From assembly GCA_013416795.1 (NCBI GenBank), contig RQSC01000025.1, forward strand, positions 346,858-410,857: 64,000 nucleotides of DNA. Direction: 5' to 3'. The stretch's first letter is position 1. The number at the start of each line of letters is the position of its first letter. Source of the stretch: Prasinococcaceae sp. CCMP 1430 (Eukaryota; Plantae; Prasinodermophyta). Of the stretch, positions 27,567 through 36,869 are shown piece by piece. The translations under genes and the position numbers were made by a program. Below the pieces are notes generated by a model. The model worked only from the letters and a program-made list of their open reading frames with translations. It was not told the DNA's origin and made no database searches.

Positions 27567-28210
27567 GCGCGTCGGCGGTGATGAGCGCGCGCACCGTCCA
27601 AGTCGCGGCCCCAGCCGCGCACCCGCGCGGCCGGACGGCCGGCCGCGGCGCGCGCGCCGACCGAGCCGCGAGACGGAACCCAGCCAGACCAGCCAGGCCC
27701 CCGGGCCAGCTGACTCCAGCCACCCCCAGGCAGCCTCCAGCCAGCCAGCCAGCTGGTCTGCTGACTGAGAGAGGCCGCGCCCGGCCGGCAGCCAGCCGGC
27801 CTCTGCGAGCGCCTCGGCTGAAGACGCGCACAGCCTGAAAGAGTCGCGACGAGTCAACTAGTACCATCAGATCGTACTACTACAGCATAGCTCTGCCTGT
27901 TGTTGTTGTTTGTGGCGGGTGTCGTGCACCTCGCGGTCGGATGTAGAATGGGATGAAAAAGCATGAGGAGTGGAGAGCGCAGCAAGCGTCCAGTCCGCGC
28001 ACACCTACTACAGTAGGTAGCTACTGTGGATGAGGAATTGGAATTCGAGTGAGATGTGTGCACGTACGTGCGGCTGGGGAGGCAGCCGGCGCGTCCGTGG
28101 CCGGCTCGGACGCGTGCGTGCGCGGGTGGGCCGCCGGGCGTCGACGCGGGGGGGTGCGCANTGCTGCTGCCTGGGTGAGAGCGGACCGGGGGGGGAGGCT
28201 GACTGACCAG

Positions 28211-29383
28211 GGTCTGCACGCGCGCGGCGGCGGCGAGTACGTGCGGCGCCAGTGGCAGCGCGCGCGCGGCAGGGCTGGTGGGGTGGGGGGCACGCCTTCG
28301 CGCGCAGCGCGCGGCGCGGATGGCGGTCTCCATGGGGCATCGAAATCGGCGAGGCCCAGGGGGGGGGTATCCCAGGCGGCAGGCGGGAGCGCAGCTGGCG
28401 CGGGTGGCCCGGCACCACAGGCACTCCGCGGAGGCACTGAGGCCCAGTGGGCGCTCGCGGACAAGCTCGCCGCGCCGGTCGGCTTCGCGGCGGGCGTGTT
28501 TGGCAGCGTGGTGGGCGTCGGGGGTGGTACAATCATCGTGCCTGCGCTCACATCTTGCGCGGGCGTGGCACAGAAGGTAATCAGCGGCACGAGCCTGGTG
28601 GCCGTGCTCGCGACGAGCGCTGCGAGCAGCGCCGCGTATGCCACGAACGGGCTCATCGACACCAAGGTGCGTTGCGCTCCACGCGGGCGTGCAGGGCGTG
28701 GCACCATCTCCGCGCTTGTGCTTCGGACCGCAAAGATTGCTTTCGTGGGCTTTGCTCACGGCTGCACGGAGCTGACCCGGCGCGCGCCGCGTGCCTTGCC
28801 TGCGGGCGCGCCTCCTCCTGCTCCTCAACAGGCCGCTGCCATCGTGGCAGCAACGGCGCTACTCAGCGCGAGCTTCGGCGCGCGCGCAACAGCCACGCTC
28901 TCCACACAGCAGCTCAAGCGTTTCCTTGGCTTCTTCCTGGTGAGCGTCGCCCCGCTGATTCCCCTAAAGAAAGCCATCTACCAAGGTCGAAAAGACGAGG
29001 CGGTCGTTACGGGTGAGCTCGATGCGGCACGGGCATGCGTGCTCGCTGCGACGGGCGCCGTGGCGGGCTTCGCGAGCGGCCTACTGGGCATCGGCGGCGG
29101 CACAATCGTCACCCCATTGCTCGCGTTGACGACCGACCTGCCACAGGCTGGCGCCGTCGCGACCTCACTCGCAGCGATGTTCCTGCCGAGCTGCGTGGCC
29201 CTTGCGACACACGCTTCCTTGGGCAACGTGCGCTGGCGCATGGGCGCTTTCCTGGCGATGGGCACAGCGCTCGGCGCGGGGGTCGGCAGCCGGGCAGCAT
29301 TGAGCGCCCCGGACGGGGCGCTCGAGGGTGTGTTCGCCCTGGGCATGGCCTTTCTAGGCGCGCGCACGCTCAAGTGGGTGTGA
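28211..29383 (+). CDS. TauE/SafE (TSUP, sulfite exporter) family membrane transporter; intron 28667-28831; 5' end unresolved
   Basis: Two repeats of the family motif (AGVFGSVVGVGGGTIIVP...SGTSL and AGFASGLLGIGGGTIVTP...AVATSL) and a hydrophobic profile. The true start is unclear near the N at 28161. Confidence 0.85.
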   Translation, partial: GLHARGGGEYVRRQWQRARGRAGGVGGTPSRAARGADGGLHGASKSARPRGGVSQAAGGSAAGAGGPAPQALRGGTEAQWALADKLAAPVGFAAGVFGSVVGVGGGTIIVPALTSCAGVAQKVISGTSLVAVLATSAASSAAYATNGLIDTKVRCAPRGRAGRGTISALVLRTAKIAFVGFAHGCTELTRRAPRALPAGAPPPAPQQAAAIVAATALLSASFGARATATLSTQQLKRFLGFFLVSVAPLIPLKKAIYQGRKDEAVVTGELDAARACVLAATGAVAGFASGLLGIGGGTIVTPLLALTTDLPQAGAVATSLAAMFLPSCVALATHASLGNVRWRMGAFLAMGTALGAGVGSRAALSAPDGALEGVFALGMAFLGARTLKWV

Positions 29384-30560
29384 GGGGGCGCGCCCCCGTC
29401 ACCGCGCGGCCGCCGATCACTTGTGCTGATGGTATGCCTCACTCAAACACATGGACGGCCGGCCCCCATAATTATTCGGCCTTGTCGTCGATTTTCCTGC
29501 CAGAGCCGAACCCGCCGCCGCACCGCGCCTGCGACTGCACCCCCCCCACATACAGACCCCCCCCCCCAAAAATTGGTATCGTGGTTTTCCTACTCAAGTT
29601 CGTACTGTACAGTGTACTGTTCGACGCAGCTTGATTGATGGGCATGTTCCTCGTCGTGCGGGCCATGTGGTCAGCATTGCGCGCCCGCGCCCTCCGCCGC
29701 TGCCCCTCTCCCCCCCCCCCCCTCTCCTCTGCCCTCCCGCCTGGCTGGCGGTGCCCCCCCGGCGCGCCGTTGGTCAGCCCGCGTCGATTCCTGGCCCACC
29801 GCGGGCGAAGCGCCTTTTCCCGCCGCGGACCCCGCACGATCGTCGGCCGGCCGGCCGGCGATTTCCCCCTTGGCTGGCTTGGGTCCTGTCCGCCCCTGGA
29901 CTGATTGGATTTCCGTTTCCATTCGTCTGCTCGTGCGTCTGTCGGTCGGTCTCGGTCTCGGTTTCGTTCTGGATCTCGATCTCGATCTGTGGCTGTGTGT
30001 GTGTCTGTGGCTGCGACGCGGCGCGCGGCGCGCGCTCGGCCGGAGCGAGCGGCTGCCGCGGCGGCGATCGGTCGGTNCGCGAGGATGGCGATGTAGTCGA
30101 ATGAGCGCGCGCGCACAGGCACGCGCGCAGGCGCGCTCGTCGCACAGGCACACGCACGCACGCTTGCACGCATGGTCGCACACACACCTCCCTCACCCCC
30201 CAGTCGAGCACGAATGCGACGGCGCCCGAGAACTCAGCGCGAGAGAGCTGCCGCCGCGCAGGGGTGCCGGGCGCGCCGCTTGCGCTTGCGGGGAGGCCAA
30301 GGCGGCGGGTCCACGCAAGTGGCGTTGCGCGGCGGTGCGTGCCCGTGCGCCCGCGCCGCCCTGCGAACCGCGCTGCGCACCGTCGCTCTGAGAAACCCTA
30401 GCGGGCGTACTGAATTCGCGCCGGGGAGGTTGCGAGGCGTGCGCAACCGTCGCGGGTGCAGCCGGCGGTGGTGCGCCAGCCGCGGAAGAGGCCTATCATC
30501 TTGACGAGGATCCGACTGACCCTAGCCCCTACGCGCAGGTCTCACGCGGCGCGTGCAGTC

Positions 30561-33500
30561 ATGAGCACGCTCAGTGCCTCGGGCGCCAAGGTCGTCGCAC
30601 AGCTGATGCGCCTTGCGAAGGCGAACCCGGCACTCGCTGTTGGGTCACTCGCGCTGCTGTGGCCTGCGCTCAGTGTCGCGAGCGTGAGCTTCGTGCTCCT
30701 CCTGCCGCTGCTCATCCCGGCATCCGTCATCGCTCTTGCCGGCATCGTATTCTACAAGTACGTGGGCGCAGGCAATGCACACACTGCAACGCCGGCGCCA
30801 GAGGCGAAGGAGCAGGCACCTGCCGCAACCGCCGCGGCGAGCAGCGATGACCTGCCGCCAGCGCCGAAGGAGCAAGCACCTGCCGCACCCACTGCGGCAA
30901 GCAGCGAAGACCTCCCGCCGGTGCCCGTGTACAAGCAGTGGGTCGACCCCATCCCCGAGAACGAGACGTTCGACCAGCTCCGCAAGATCATGGACGAGCG
31001 CATCATCGTGATTGACGGCGCGATGGGCACGTCTGTGCAGAAGTACAAACTGGAGGAGGAGGACTACTGCGGCACGCTGTATCCCGACCACTCGGTGGAC
31101 CTGAAAGGAAACAACGACCTGCTGGTGCTCACCCGCCCGGACGTCATCGAGGAGATCCACAACAACTTTCTCGAGGCGGGTGCGGACATCATTGAGACAA
31201 ACACCTTCAACGGCACGTTCATCTCGCAGGGCGACTACAACATGGACACGTACGACGAGGTGTTCGCGATCAACAAGGGCGCGGCCGAGCTGGCGAAGAA
31301 GTGCACGACTGCGTGGACCCAGAAGGACCCGTCGAGGCCGCGCTTCACCGCCGGTGCCATCGGGCCCACCAACAAGACTCTGTCGGTGTCGCCGTCGGTG
31401 GAGAACCCGGCGTTCCGCGGCTGCACGTGGGACGAGGTGGTGAAGGCGTACTACGAGCAGTGCGAGGGCCTCATGGCCGGCGGCGTTGACCTGTTCTTGG
31501 TGGAGACCATCTTCGACACGCTGAACGCCAAGGCCGCGCTGTTCGCCATCGACAAGTTCTTCGCTGACAAGAAGTGCAGGATTCCCGTGTTCGTGTCAGG
31601 CACCATCGTGGACAACTCGGGGCGCACGCTCTCCGGCCAGACCAACGAGGCGTTCTGGAACTCGCTGGCGCACAGCAAGCCGCTGGCGATCGGCCTGAAC
31701 TGCGCGCTCGGCGCAGACGACATGAAGCCGTACGTCGAGAACCTGAGCAGCTGCGCGGACTGCTACGTCTTCTGCTACCCCAACGCGGGCCTGCCCAACG
31801 CGATGGGTGGTTATGACCAGAAAGGTGACGAGTTCGCCGAGGAGATCCGCCCCTTCATGGAGGCCGGCATCCTCAACGGCATCGGCGGCTGCTGCGGCAC
31901 CTCTTTCGAGCACATCAAGGCCGTCGCGGACATGGCCAAGGAGTATCAGCCGCGCGCGTGCCACGCCGTCAAGTCGCTCATGCGCCTGTCCGGCCTCGAG
32001 CCGCTGAACTACGAGCCGTGCCTGAGCAACATGCGCTCCACTTTCCTGAACGTGGGCGAGCGTTGCAACGTGGCGGGCTCGAGCATCTTCAAGAAGGCCA
32101 TCGTGGACGGCAACTGGGACAAGGCACTGTCCATCGCCGTGAAGCAGGTCGACGCGGGTGCGGACGTTGTCGACATCAACGTCGACGACGGGCTGATCGA
32201 GCCCATCGGCGCGATGACCAAGTTCGTCAACCTGCTGGTGTCGGATCCCGAGGCCTCCAAGATGCCCTTCATGATCGATTCGTCCAAGTTCCACGTGGTT
32301 GAGTGCGGCGTCAAGTGCTGCCAGGGCAAGTCCATCGTCAACTCGATCTCGCTCAAGGAGGGCGAGGAGGCGTTCATCAAGAACGCCAGGATGGTGAAAG
32401 CGTTTGGCTCGGCGGTGGTAGTGATGGCGTTCGACGAGAACGGTCAGGCCGCGACCTGCAAGGAGAAGGTGTCGATGTGCCAGCGCGCGTACAAGATCCT
32501 CGTGGAGGAGGTCGGCTTCAACGCGCAGGACATCGTGTTCGACCCGAACATCCTGACGATTGGCACGGGCATGGCGGAGCACAACGACTACGCGGTGGAC
32601 TTCATCAACGCCACGCGCGAGATCAAGCGCACCTGCCCGGGCTGCAAGATCTCTGGCGGCGTGTCCAACCTGGCTTTCAGCTTCCGTGGCAACGAGCCGG
32701 TGCGCCGCGCGTGCCACAGCGTGTTCCTGCACTACGCCTGTGCCGCGGGCATGGACATGGGCATCGTCAACGCCGCCCACTGCATCGAGGACAAGTACGA
32801 GAACATCGACAAGGAGCTGCTCGGCTACGTGGAGGACCTCGTGCTCAATCGCTGCGACAACGCGACCGAGCGCATGCTCGAGTACGCCGCCACGCTCGAC
32901 CCCAAGTCCAAGCCGTGCGCTCTGCGCAAGAAGGATGAGCACAAGGCCTTCGTCGCTGCTCCCAAGATCAACGAGCACGGCGTCGACCGTATCGCCGAGC
33001 CCGATGCGAGCACGCTCGTCCCGGTGCCCGTGTACAAGCAGTGGGTCGACCCCATCCCCGAGAACGAGACGTTCGACCAGCTCCGCAAGATCATGGACGA
33101 GCGCATCATCGTGATTGACGGCGCGATGGGCACGTCTGTGCAGAAGTACAAACTGGAGGAGGAGGACTACTGCGGCACGCTGTATCCCGACCACTCGGTG
33201 GACCTGAAAGGAAACAACGACCTGCTGGTGCTCACCCGCCCGGACGTCATCGAGGAGATCCACAACAACTTTCTCGAGGCGGGTGCGGACATCATTGAGA
33301 CAAACACCTTCAACGGCACGTTCATCTCGCAGGGCGACTACAACATGGACACGTACGACGAGGTGTTCGCGATCAACAAGGGCGCGGCCGAGCTGGCGAA
33401 GAAGTGCACGACTGCGTGGACCCAGAAGGACCCGTCGAGGCCGCGCTTCACCGCCGGTGCCATCGGGCCCACCAACAAGACTCTGTCGGTGTCGCCGTCG

Positions 33501-36500
33501 GTGGAGAACCCGGCGTTCCGCGGCTGCACGTGGGACGAGGTGGTGAAGGCGTACTACGAGCAGTGCGAGGGCCTCATGGCCGGCGGCGTTGACCTGTTCT
33601 TGGTGGAGACCATCTTCGACACGCTGAACGCCAAGGCCGCGCTGTTCGCCATCGACAAGTTCTTCGCTGACAAGAAGTGCAGGATTCCCGTGTTCGTGTC
33701 AGGCACCATCGTGGACAACTCGGGGCGCACGCTCTCCGGCCAGACCAACGAGGCGTTCTGGAACTCGCTGGCGCACAGCAAGCCGCTGGCGATCGGCCTG
33801 AACTGCGCGCTCGGCGCAGACGACATGAAGCCGTACGTCGAGAACCTGAGCAGCTGCGCGGACTGCTACGTCTTCTGCTACCCCAACGCGGGCCTGCCCA
33901 ACGCGATGGGTGGTTATGACCAGAAAGGTGACGAGTTCGCCGAGGAGATCCGCCCCTTCATGGAGGCCGGCATCCTCAACGGCATCGGCGGCTGCTGCGG
34001 CACCTCTTTCGAGCACATCAAGGCCGTCGCGGACATGGCCAAGGAGTATCAGCCGCGCGCGTGCCACGCCGTCAAGTCGCTCATGCGCCTGTCCGGCCTC
34101 GAGCCGCTGAACTACGAGCCGTGCCTGAGCAACATGCGCTCCACTTTCCTGAACGTGGGCGAGCGTTGCAACGTGGCGGGCTCGAGCATCTTCAAGAAGG
34201 CCATCGTGGACGGCAACTGGGACAAGGCACTGTCCATCGCCGTGAAGCAGGTCGACGCGGGTGCGGACGTTGTCGACATCAACGTCGACGACGGGCTGAT
34301 CGAGCCCATCGGCGCGATGACCAAGTTCGTCAACCTGCTGGTGTCGGATCCCGAGGCCTCCAAGATGCCCTTCATGATCGATTCGTCCAAGTTCCACGTG
34401 GTTGAGTGCGGCGTCAAGTGCTGCCAGGGCAAGTCCATCGTCAACTCGATCTCGCTCAAGGAGGGCGAGGAGGCGTTCATCAAGAACGCCAGGATGGTGA
34501 AAGCGTTTGGCTCGGCGGTGGTAGTGATGGCGTTCGACGAGAACGGTCAGGCCGCGACCTGCAAGGAGAAGGTGTCGATGTGCCAGCGCGCGTACAAGAT
34601 CCTCGTGGAGGAGGTCGGCTTCAACGCGCAGGACATCGTGTTCGACCCGAACATCCTGACGATTGGCACGGGCATGGCGGAGCACAACGACTACGCGGTG
34701 GACTTCATCAACGCCACGCGCGAGATCAAGCGCACCTGCCCGGGCTGCAAGATCTCTGGCGGCGTGTCCAACCTGGCTTTCAGCTTCCGTGGCAACGAGC
34801 CGGTGCGCCGCGCGTGCCACAGCGTGTTCCTGCACTACGCCTGTGCCGCGGGCATGGACATGGGCATCGTCAACGCCGCCCACTGCATCGAGGACAAGTA
34901 CGAGAACATCGACAAGGAGCTGCTCGGCTACGTGGAGGACCTCGTGCTCAATCGCTGCGACAACGCGACCGAGCGCATGCTCGAGTACGCCGCCACGCTC
35001 GACCCCAAGTCCAAGCCGTGCGCTCTGCGCAAGAAGGGTGACGTAGTGGAGAAGGTCGTGGAGAAGGGCTCGTCATGGCGTGACAAGTCCGTGCAGGACC
35101 GCCTGAGCCACTCCCTTGTGAAGGGCATCGACGAGTTTGTCGTGCGCGACACCGAGGAGGCGCGCACGTGCGGCCTTTACCCGCGCCCGCTGCACGTCAT
35201 CGAGGGCCCGCTCATGGACGGCATGAGCACCGTCGGCGACCTCTTCGGCGCGGGCAAGATGTTCCTGCCGCAGGTGATCAAGTCGGCGCGCGTGATGAAG
35301 AAGGCCGTGGCGCACTTGATCCCCTTCATGGAGGAGGAGAAGCGGTTGATGGCCGAGCAGGAGGGCATTGACGCCGACGCCGACAACTCTGTGGGCACCT
35401 TTGTGATTGCCACCGTCAAGGGTGACGTGCACGACATCGGCAAGAACATCGTGGCGGTGGTGCTGGGCTGCAACAACTGGAAAGTGATCGACCTCGGCGT
35501 GATGTGCTCGTGCCAGTCCATCCTCGACGCGTGCAAGGAGCACAACGCGGACATTCTGGGCCTCAGCGGCCTTATCACTCCTTCGCTGGACGAGATGGTC
35601 ACCGTTGCCAAGGAGATGGAGAAGGCGGGCTTCAAGATCCCGCTTCTCGTGGGCGGCGCAACCACCAGCCGCATGCATACGGCGGTCAAGCTGACCCCCC
35701 AGTACAGCGGACCGACCGTGCACGTGCTCGACGCCTCGCGTGCGGTGCCGGTGTGCTCGTCACTCATTGACGAGAAGCAGTACGCCGAATTTGTCGAGGA
35801 CACGCGCGAGACGTACAAGGAGATGCGCGAGGAGTTCTACGCCGGCCTCGAGGACCGCAAGTACGTTTCGCTCGAGCAGGCGCGCGCCAAGGCGCTCACG
35901 GTTGACTTTACCACGCCCGAGAACACGCCGGTGACGCCCAAGCAGCTGGGCGTCCACGTCCTGCGCGACTTTCCCATCGAGGAGGTGGTCGATTACATCG
36001 ACTGGAACCCCTTCTTCCAGGTGTGGCAGCTGCGCGGCCGCTATCCGAACCGTGGCTATCCCAAGATCTTCAACGACGAGACTGTCGGTGCCGAGGCGAA
36101 GAAGCTCTTCGACGACGCACAGACCATGCTCAAAGACATCATCGCGCACAAGAAGCTTTCGCTGCGCGGCGTGCTCGGCCTCTTCCCGGCCAACTCCGTC
36201 GGTGACGACATCGAGGTGTACGCCGAAGACGGCGAGCGCGGTGCGCCCCGGGCGAGCTTCTACACCCTGCGCGAACAGGCCGAGAAGGAGAACACCAGCG
36301 AGCCCTACCTTGCGCTGGCGGACTTTGTGGCTCCGAAGGAGAGCGGCGTGAAAGATTACGTGGGCGCGTTCGTCACATCGGCCGGCTTCGGCCTCGAGGA
36401 GATGACCAAGGCGTTTAAGGCGGACAACGATGACTACAGCTACATCCTCGCTGAAGCGCTCGCGGACCGTCTGGCGGAGGCCTTCGCCGAGGTGGTGCAC

Positions 36501-36869
36501 ATCAAGATTCGCAAGGAGTACTGGGGATATGCGCCCGATGAGGACCTGTCGCCCGACGACCTTCTCAAGGTTAAGTACGACGGCATCCGCCCGGCGCCGG
36601 GCTATCCGTCGCAGCCCGACCACACGGAGAAGAACACCATGTGGGAGCTCATGAAGGTCGCCGAGGAGACCGACGTGACGCTCACCGAGTCGCTCGCCAT
36701 GCTGCCGGCCGCCTCGGTGTCTGCGCTCGTGTTCGGCGGCAAGTGCTCGAAGTACTTCGCCGTTGGCAAGATCACCGACGAACAGGTGCAGGACTACGCC
36801 GCGCGCAAGAAGATGGACGTCAAAGAGGTCGAGCGGTGGCTCGCGACGAGCCTCAACTATGAGCCTTGA
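30561..36869 (+). CDS. METH: Cobalamin-dependent methionine synthase, 2102 aa, intronless, with N-terminal hydrophobic extension and duplicated Hcy- and folate-binding modules
   Basis: Hcy domain ([28 protein letters not shown]) x2; pterin domain ([31 protein letters not shown]) x2; cap ([23 protein letters not shown]); B12 motif [10 protein letters not shown]; activation domain ([21 protein letters not shown]). Confidence 0.98.
30918..35037. repeat. 2017-bp direct repeat inside METH (30918-32934 and 33021-35037, offset 2103 bp = 701 codons), with a unique 86-bp spacer at 32935-33020
   Basis: The translations of both copies are identical and every nucleotide stretch I compared was identical. 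Boundaries were read directly (CCGGTGCCCGTG at the start, AAGAAGG at the end). Confidence 0.95.

Follow-up and report, generated by a model that had tools for sequence, protein, structure and literature searches.

A conserved N-terminal stretch of green-algal methionine synthase predicted to anchor the enzyme in a membrane

The cobalamin-dependent methionine synthase MetH is a textbook soluble enzyme that joins the folate and methyl cycles, and the vitamin B12 requirement of about half of all algae is due to it. We analysed a 64,000-nucleotide stretch of DNA from Prasinococcaceae sp. CCMP 1430 (assembly GCA_013416795.1, contig RQSC01000025.1, positions 346,858 to 410,857 of the forward strand; hereafter the window), in which a forward-strand open reading frame (ORF) at 30561-36869 encodes a MetH that opens with a long, uncharged hydrophobic stretch ahead of its first catalytic domain. 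This locus raises the question of whether the stretch belongs to the protein and, if so, what it does there. We consider it fairly probable that the first 65 residues are a translated, uncleaved membrane anchor, likely a hairpin or re-entrant loop that leaves both its ends cytosolic. What is new here is a conserved N-terminal anchor on an already known enzyme, with a mechanism that we infer.

The N-terminal extension and its transcripts

The ORF runs for 2102 codons from the ATG at 30561 to the stop codon at 36867-36869, in a window whose G+C content (GC) is 63-75%, and encodes a complete MetH. Pfam finds two copies each of the homocysteine S-methyltransferase domain (PF02574, E 2.9e-181) and the pterin-binding domain (PF00809, E 9.1e-108), together with the B12 cap (PF02607), the B12-binding domain (PF02310), whose DxHxxG motif reads DVHDIG, and the activation domain dependent on S-adenosylmethionine (SAM) (PF02965, residues 1806-2084, E 2.6e-117). 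The zinc-binding cysteines are visible in the translation as the Cys of GLNCALG and the Cys-Cys of GGCCGT. In every character that defines membership, the ORF is a cobalamin-dependent methionine synthase. Its domains (homocysteine-binding, pterin-binding, B12 cap, B12-binding with DxHxxG, activation) stand in the same order as in the canonical MetH/MTR of E. coli and human. Those enzymes, however, are soluble and have only about 20 residues before the first domain, whereas here 119 residues of predicted anchor and linker precede it, and the homocysteine- and pterin-binding module is doubled.

Residues 1-20 are rich in Ser, Ala, Lys and Arg, basic (K10, R17, K20) and free of acidic residues. 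They lead into an uncharged run of 45 residues, A21-Y65, which is bounded by K20 and K66, contains prolines 23, 35, 49 and 53, and reaches a maximum 19-residue Kyte-Doolittle mean of 2.63 at residue 45. A preliminary description of this DNA, made from the sequence alone, had noted an uncharged 42-residue string with three prolines and basic flanks before the first catalytic domain. The string is real and corresponds to A24-Y65; a fourth proline, P23, falls just outside it and inside the full run, and K20 and K66 provide the flanks. Of the limits given for it, 30630-30764, the start is correct, while the string ends three codons earlier, at 30755. The 60-bp tandem repeat described in the linker was also recovered, with its 18-residue peptide repeats beginning at 30807 and 30867. 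Pfam matched no family to residues 1-119, even at E≤5.

RNA contigs from four runs span 30537-30947 without a joint, in agreement with the earlier assumption that the segment is part of the mRNA and is not spliced out; in two 'organism A' runs and one marine metatranscriptome the span is free of indels as well. The 'organism A' runs are small contig sets, which we treated as transcriptomes since spliced forms occur in them; all public runs with the MetH 5′ stretch are stored as contigs, from which transcript starts and expression levels cannot be read. Upstream of 30537 the contigs share a leader of 20-36 nt that stands in place of the genomic sequence, with the switch at an AG acceptor (30537-30538), and contains no ATG. 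Because an independent Tara DNA scaffold matches the window upstream of 30537, we attribute this mismatch between leader and genome to splicing and not to misassembly. As the leader lacks an ATG, the ATG at 30561 is the first of the known mRNA. Another in-frame ATG, at codon 16, also precedes the predicted anchor, and none follows until codon 144, inside the conserved start of the first domain.

The leader itself is at least 36 nt long and ends in ...GGGCGAGGCG, spliced onto 30537. Exact, one-mismatch and four-error fuzzy searches did not find it on either strand of the 64-kb window. A cis leader exon within 30 kb is ruled out, since the leader is missing from the window; it may come from a far-off first exon, from an unassembled stretch or from trans-splicing.

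The predicted anchor also has a coding-like composition, with a GC of 0.80 at third codon positions against 0.47 at second positions. In an RNA contig from a wild population, all three changes within it are synonymous, and the sole amino-acid change, T90P, lies in the linker. The same 2102-residue protein is encoded on the Tara metagenome scaffold, which differs from the window at two sites in the 357-bp extension and at six in the 220 bp upstream. A word search with residues 1-125 returned nothing beyond this same protein on the Tara scaffold.

Conservation and specificity of the predicted anchor

A word search with a canonical single-module MetH as query (33021-36866) returned hundreds of eukaryotic MetH proteins, and we measured the region before the first DGAMGT motif in the best 120 relatives. 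In about 45 of these 120 (about 30 after near-identical entries were dropped) the N-terminus is extended by 80-250 residues, and hydrophobicity within the extension peaks at 2.2-2.9. The 22 of these that we aligned have the same stretch with the same proline spacing, and their alignment follows the pattern [R/K]xxP-x11-P-x13-17-PxxxP, then about 12 hydrophobic residues. In this design a short helix ends in A-[R/K]-x-x-P, the second proline is often part of W-P, the last pair reads [S/A/T/L]-P-x-x-x-P-[A/G], and a K or R usually stands directly after the hydrophobic stretch. P35 and P53 are kept in at least 90% of the 22 sequences. The uncharged run measures 37-51 residues (mean 45.5), with a net positive charge on the N-terminal flank in 18 of the 22 orthologues and on the C-terminal flank in 15. 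The linker, at 55 residues here and 50-130 in other orthologues, is variable and of low complexity. It is mainly because 22 orthologues keep the stretch that a chance origin can be excluded.

Carriers of the predicted anchor include Prasinococcus capsulatus (Prasinodermophyta or Palmophyllophyceae), the nearest named relative; Ostreococcus tauri and Bathycoccus prasinos (Mamiellophyceae); Chloropicon primus, C. roscoffensis, Cymbomonas tetramitiformis and a pedinophyte from other prasinophyte-grade lineages; Nannochloris, Trebouxia and Auxenochlorella (Trebouxiophyceae); Pleodorina, Astrephomene and three Volvox species (Volvocales); and the streptophyte algae Chlorokybus and Closterium. Judged from these alignments, green-algal MetH has conserved the predicted anchor in three phyla (Prasinodermophyta, Chlorophyta and streptophyte algae), and the feature is not peculiar to one genome. 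Since all three green phyla have carriers, it is older than the split between them.

Stramenopile doubled MetH proteins, such as that of Hondaea, have no anchor, and in databases many models of the green-algal enzyme lack one too. Green-type metagenome proteins of about 1980 residues that appear anchorless start at a GTG-encoded Val exactly on the VPxY motif, and separate 5′ exon fragments bearing the anchor match them. We rejected these proteins as genuine soluble forms, because a GTG-Val start at an exon boundary is a bacterial gene-caller artefact. The METH of Chlamydomonas reinhardtii was not recovered in a later word search, which found only Pleodorina and Volvox.

A CBM48 domain (AMPK-beta-type, PF16561) occurs in the N-terminal region of streptophyte-algal MetH, in Closterium (residues 127-199), Mesostigma (30-95) and relatives. 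It lies between anchor and enzyme in Closterium; the Mesostigma model has it at the N-terminus and has no predicted anchor.

We built a profile from the 22-sequence anchor alignment and searched 1.84 billion representative proteins with HMMER (E≤0.001). This gave 31 matches, all short (57-239 residues). Those that could be judged are 5′ pieces of green-algal MetH genes; four of the 31 could not be assigned in this way. Two matches continue into the catalytic domain, and most others share the anchor of a 2144-residue MetH and then enter an intron. No oleosin, caleosin or other family was among the 31. Eight N-terminal extensions compared with Pfam, including the oleosin family PF01277, gave no match at E≤5, and an ESM Atlas feature search with residues 1-80 gave no usable match. 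As far as sequence methods reach, the anchor appears to be a MetH-specific module. Full-text literature searches turned up no algal MetH described as membrane-anchored or N-terminally extended, and no data on its localisation; the preliminary description had not recognised the architecture, and it is indeed absent from Pfam and from the literature searched.

Topology of the predicted anchor and alternative readings

We favour a hairpin whose two ends both face the cytosol because the hydrophobic length is about twice that of a bilayer, four prolines are conserved, the flanks are positive and a basic helix precedes the run. Positive charge on both flanks fits this placement of both ends. MetH substrates and cofactors are cytosolic, which fits a cytosolic orientation of the tethered enzyme. 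The short basic helix would rest on the membrane surface, and the 45-residue proline-punctuated segment would sink into the membrane, where a helical hairpin or a re-entrant loop is its most likely shape. The floppy linker of about 55 residues would then serve as a leash, allowing the catalytic modules and the B12 and activation domains to act in the cytosol while tethered. As to the target membrane, our first guess is the endoplasmic reticulum (ER) together with the lipid droplets derived from it; the outer envelope of the plastid or mitochondrion comes next. The membrane-tethered enzyme of the preliminary description stands to the extent that the extension has the look of a membrane anchor with a disordered linker behind it; membrane insertion itself, together with hairpin topology, retention without cleavage and cytosolic orientation, is what we infer.

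The same description went further and likened the stretch to oleosin- or LDAF1-type monolayer hairpins, a comparison that found no support. Oleosin and caleosin hairpins do share with it a long uncharged segment, central prolines and basic flanks. The oleosin hairpin has about 72 hydrophobic residues and a central PX5SPX3P proline knot, and the [S/A/T/L]P-x3-P[A/G] of the MetH anchor resembles the SPX3P half of that knot. However, the MetH stretch has only 45 residues (37-51 among orthologues), only PxxxP is conserved, with the next upstream proline 11-18 residues away, and the two arms on either side of PxxxP differ in length (about 26-30 residues against about 12). We therefore rejected oleosin membership: there is no PF01277 match at E≤5, the profile search returned no oleosin, the length and the full knot differ, and AlphaFold2 draws one long helix.

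Several observations weigh against the hairpin reading, or against a uniformly translated extension. AlphaFold2, run with the orthologue alignment, gave a confident model (predicted local distance difference test, pLDDT, 90.9) with a helix at residues 3-21, a break at N22/P23 and then one unbroken helix over residues 23-72, with no hairpin. An ESM-atlas shape search matched long single helices only, which are generic, and Foldseek found no match to the model in the PDB. AlphaFold2 models proteins without a membrane, and its model backs helicity and not a tight hairpin. At the RNA level, the unitig over the extension has 0.2-0.6 times the depth of single-copy junction unitigs further 3′. We put this down to loss of 5′ coverage on a 6.4-kb mRNA, and a minority of shorter MetH transcripts is possible. 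No sequence other than an internal duplication joint is attached to 30918 in any contig.

The modelled helix would suit a single-pass signal anchor, in which a single long transmembrane helix, kinked by prolines or tilted, would have the short N-terminus on its luminal or intermembrane side and the enzyme in the cytosol. Residues 23-72 are uninterrupted at pLDDT >90, the shape matches include synaptobrevin-like proteins, and the stretch is usually followed at once by K or R. Signal-anchored enzymes such as cytochrome P450s and plastid OEP7-type proteins likewise have an uncleaved N-terminal anchor, basic flanks and a linker to a cytosolic catalytic domain. Their anchor, however, is a single helix of about 20 residues, whereas that of MetH has about 45 residues, four conserved prolines and a basic helix ahead of it. 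We regard a single-pass anchor as unlikely, in that one bilayer crossing needs only about half of the conserved hydrophobic length of 37-51 residues, the net positive N-terminal flank (18/22) disfavours its own translocation, and four conserved helix-breaking prolines suggest turns or kinks.

Alternatively, the extension could be an import device for the plastid or mitochondrion, either cleaved or kept as an anchor in the inner membrane or the thylakoid, which would place methionine synthesis at the source of homocysteine. The Ser/Ala/Lys/Arg-rich first 20 residues without acidic positions are consistent with this, as is the presence of CBM48, a starch/glycogen-binding domain, in the N-terminal region of the Closterium and Mesostigma proteins. 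Starch in green algae is plastidic. Chloroplast and mitochondrial transit peptides are hydroxylated, basic presequences of at least 30 residues without a long hydrophobic run. The MetH run begins after 20 residues here and after 10-14 in several orthologues; so short a lead, which many orthologues have and which includes Asp or Glu in some, would seem to leave too little room for a transit peptide. Uncharged over 45 residues and with its prolines at fixed spacing, the run is itself unlike one, and the conserved structure argues for retention and not removal, which makes organelle import quite unlikely. A cleavable signal peptide was ruled out: its h-region would span about 7-15 residues and lead to a cleavage site marked by small residues, whereas the uncharged run here is 45 residues and is conserved over its whole length.

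That the extension is an annotation or assembly artefact, an untranslated leader ahead of a protein beginning at the catalytic domain, is highly improbable: the extension is less deeply covered than regions further 3′ and is missing from many green-algal database models, but the sole in-frame ATG downstream of the anchor region, codon 144, would cut the conserved domain start, the anchorless metagenome models are explained by their GTG-Val start at VPxY, and the stretch is conserved as protein over three phyla and changes only synonymously in the wild.

Gene layout and implications of a possible MetH tether

The features of the gene are collected in table 1. The predicted anchor precedes the first of two catalytic modules, which are 100% identical over 2017 bp and joined in frame by the 86-bp spacer, and the metatranscriptome contigs hold the internal joint from 33020 to 30918. 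On the Tara scaffold the layout is doubled in the same way. Most of its differences from the window, at least nine of them, are mirrored in both copies, at +2103, and its own two module copies differ at only three sites; this looks like concerted evolution by gene conversion. In many green algae the PVPxYKxWVDP motif immediately precedes the first catalytic module, and here it precedes both modules (30918-30950 and 33021-33053).

Table 1. Features of the MetH gene in the window.
Feature	Position	Strand	Remarks
5′ untranslated region, last 24 nt	30537..30560	+	RNA contigs attach a 20-36 nt leader at the AG acceptor 30537-30538
Start codon	30561..30563	+	earliest ATG in the known mRNA; further in-frame ATGs at codons 16 and 144
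Short basic N-terminal helix, residues 3-21	30567..30623	+	K10, R17, K20, no acidic residue; ends in conserved A-[K/R]-x-x-P
Uncharged hydrophobic anchor (predicted), 45 residues, A21-Y65	30621..30755	+	conserved prolines P23, P35, P49, P53
Ala/Pro/Ser/Glu-rich linker, residues 66-119	30756..30917	+	
Imperfect 60-bp tandem repeat, 2.1 copies, within the linker	30796..30919	+	Tandem Repeats Finder; period 60, 85% matches
Catalytic module 1: homocysteine-binding and pterin-binding domains	30918..32934	+	starts with the conserved PVPxYKxWVDP motif
In-frame spacer, 86 bp, between identical modules	32935..33020	+	
Catalytic module 2	33021..35037	+	100% nucleotide identity to module 1
B12-binding cap, B12-binding domain, activation domain, stop codon	35038..36869	+	

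Doubling or tripling of MetH is common among green algae. Long versions were seen in Chloropicon roscoffensis (2794 residues), Cymbomonas (2783), Volvox carteri (2783) and V. africanus (2844), and sizes of about 2780-2850 residues suggest three catalytic modules. The species clusters with these long proteins also contain versions of 13xx-14xx residues, which are probably collapsed short-read assemblies.

Upstream of MetH, a segment of 30-46 nt within 30188-30233 recurs inside several distinct 'organism A' transcript contigs, where its flanks have no match in the window; it is a short repeat or else a stretch conserved within a gene family. The product of the upstream neighbour (28049-29383, forward strand) belongs to the TauE/SafE-type family of sulfite exporters (PF01925, E 2.4e-36). 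That a second sulfur-related gene lies beside MetH may be a coincidence.

Prasinoderma coloniale is a B12 auxotroph without a B12-independent methionine synthase isoform (PMC7455551). Its published GC of 69.8% would be compatible with the 63-75% of the window, and its choice as source would also suit Prasinococcus being the nearest named relative. If the window comes from P. coloniale, the tethered MetH would be its only methionine synthase, and all methionine regeneration would pass through a tethered enzyme. In Chlamydomonas, the algal B12 acquisition protein CBA1 is reported from both the plasma membrane and endomembranes, and it is abundant in a lipid-droplet proteome (PMC10828217). It belongs to the same pathway of B12 use as MetH and is an unrelated protein; co-localisation of the two, or a hand-off of B12 from one to the other, is conjecture. 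In its widest form, which we think rather unlikely, the proposal would be that green-lineage MetH, on which B12 auxotrophs such as Ostreococcus and P. coloniale rely as their one methionine synthase, is tethered to the ER or lipid droplets near CBA1, receives B12 directly and runs the methyl cycle on a membrane surface, its anchor being an ancient (more than ~1 Gyr) MetH-specific hairpin of an unnamed family. The role in lipid methylation through local SAM supply that the preliminary description envisaged is pure speculation.

Many algal MetH models in databases are 5′-truncated or collapsed. The tether idea is directly testable in transformable species. If true, a lineage-wide tether would shift the presumed site of methionine and SAM regeneration and of B12 loading, and the picoplankton concerned would include the ecologically dominant Ostreococcus, Micromonas-like algae and Bathycoccus.
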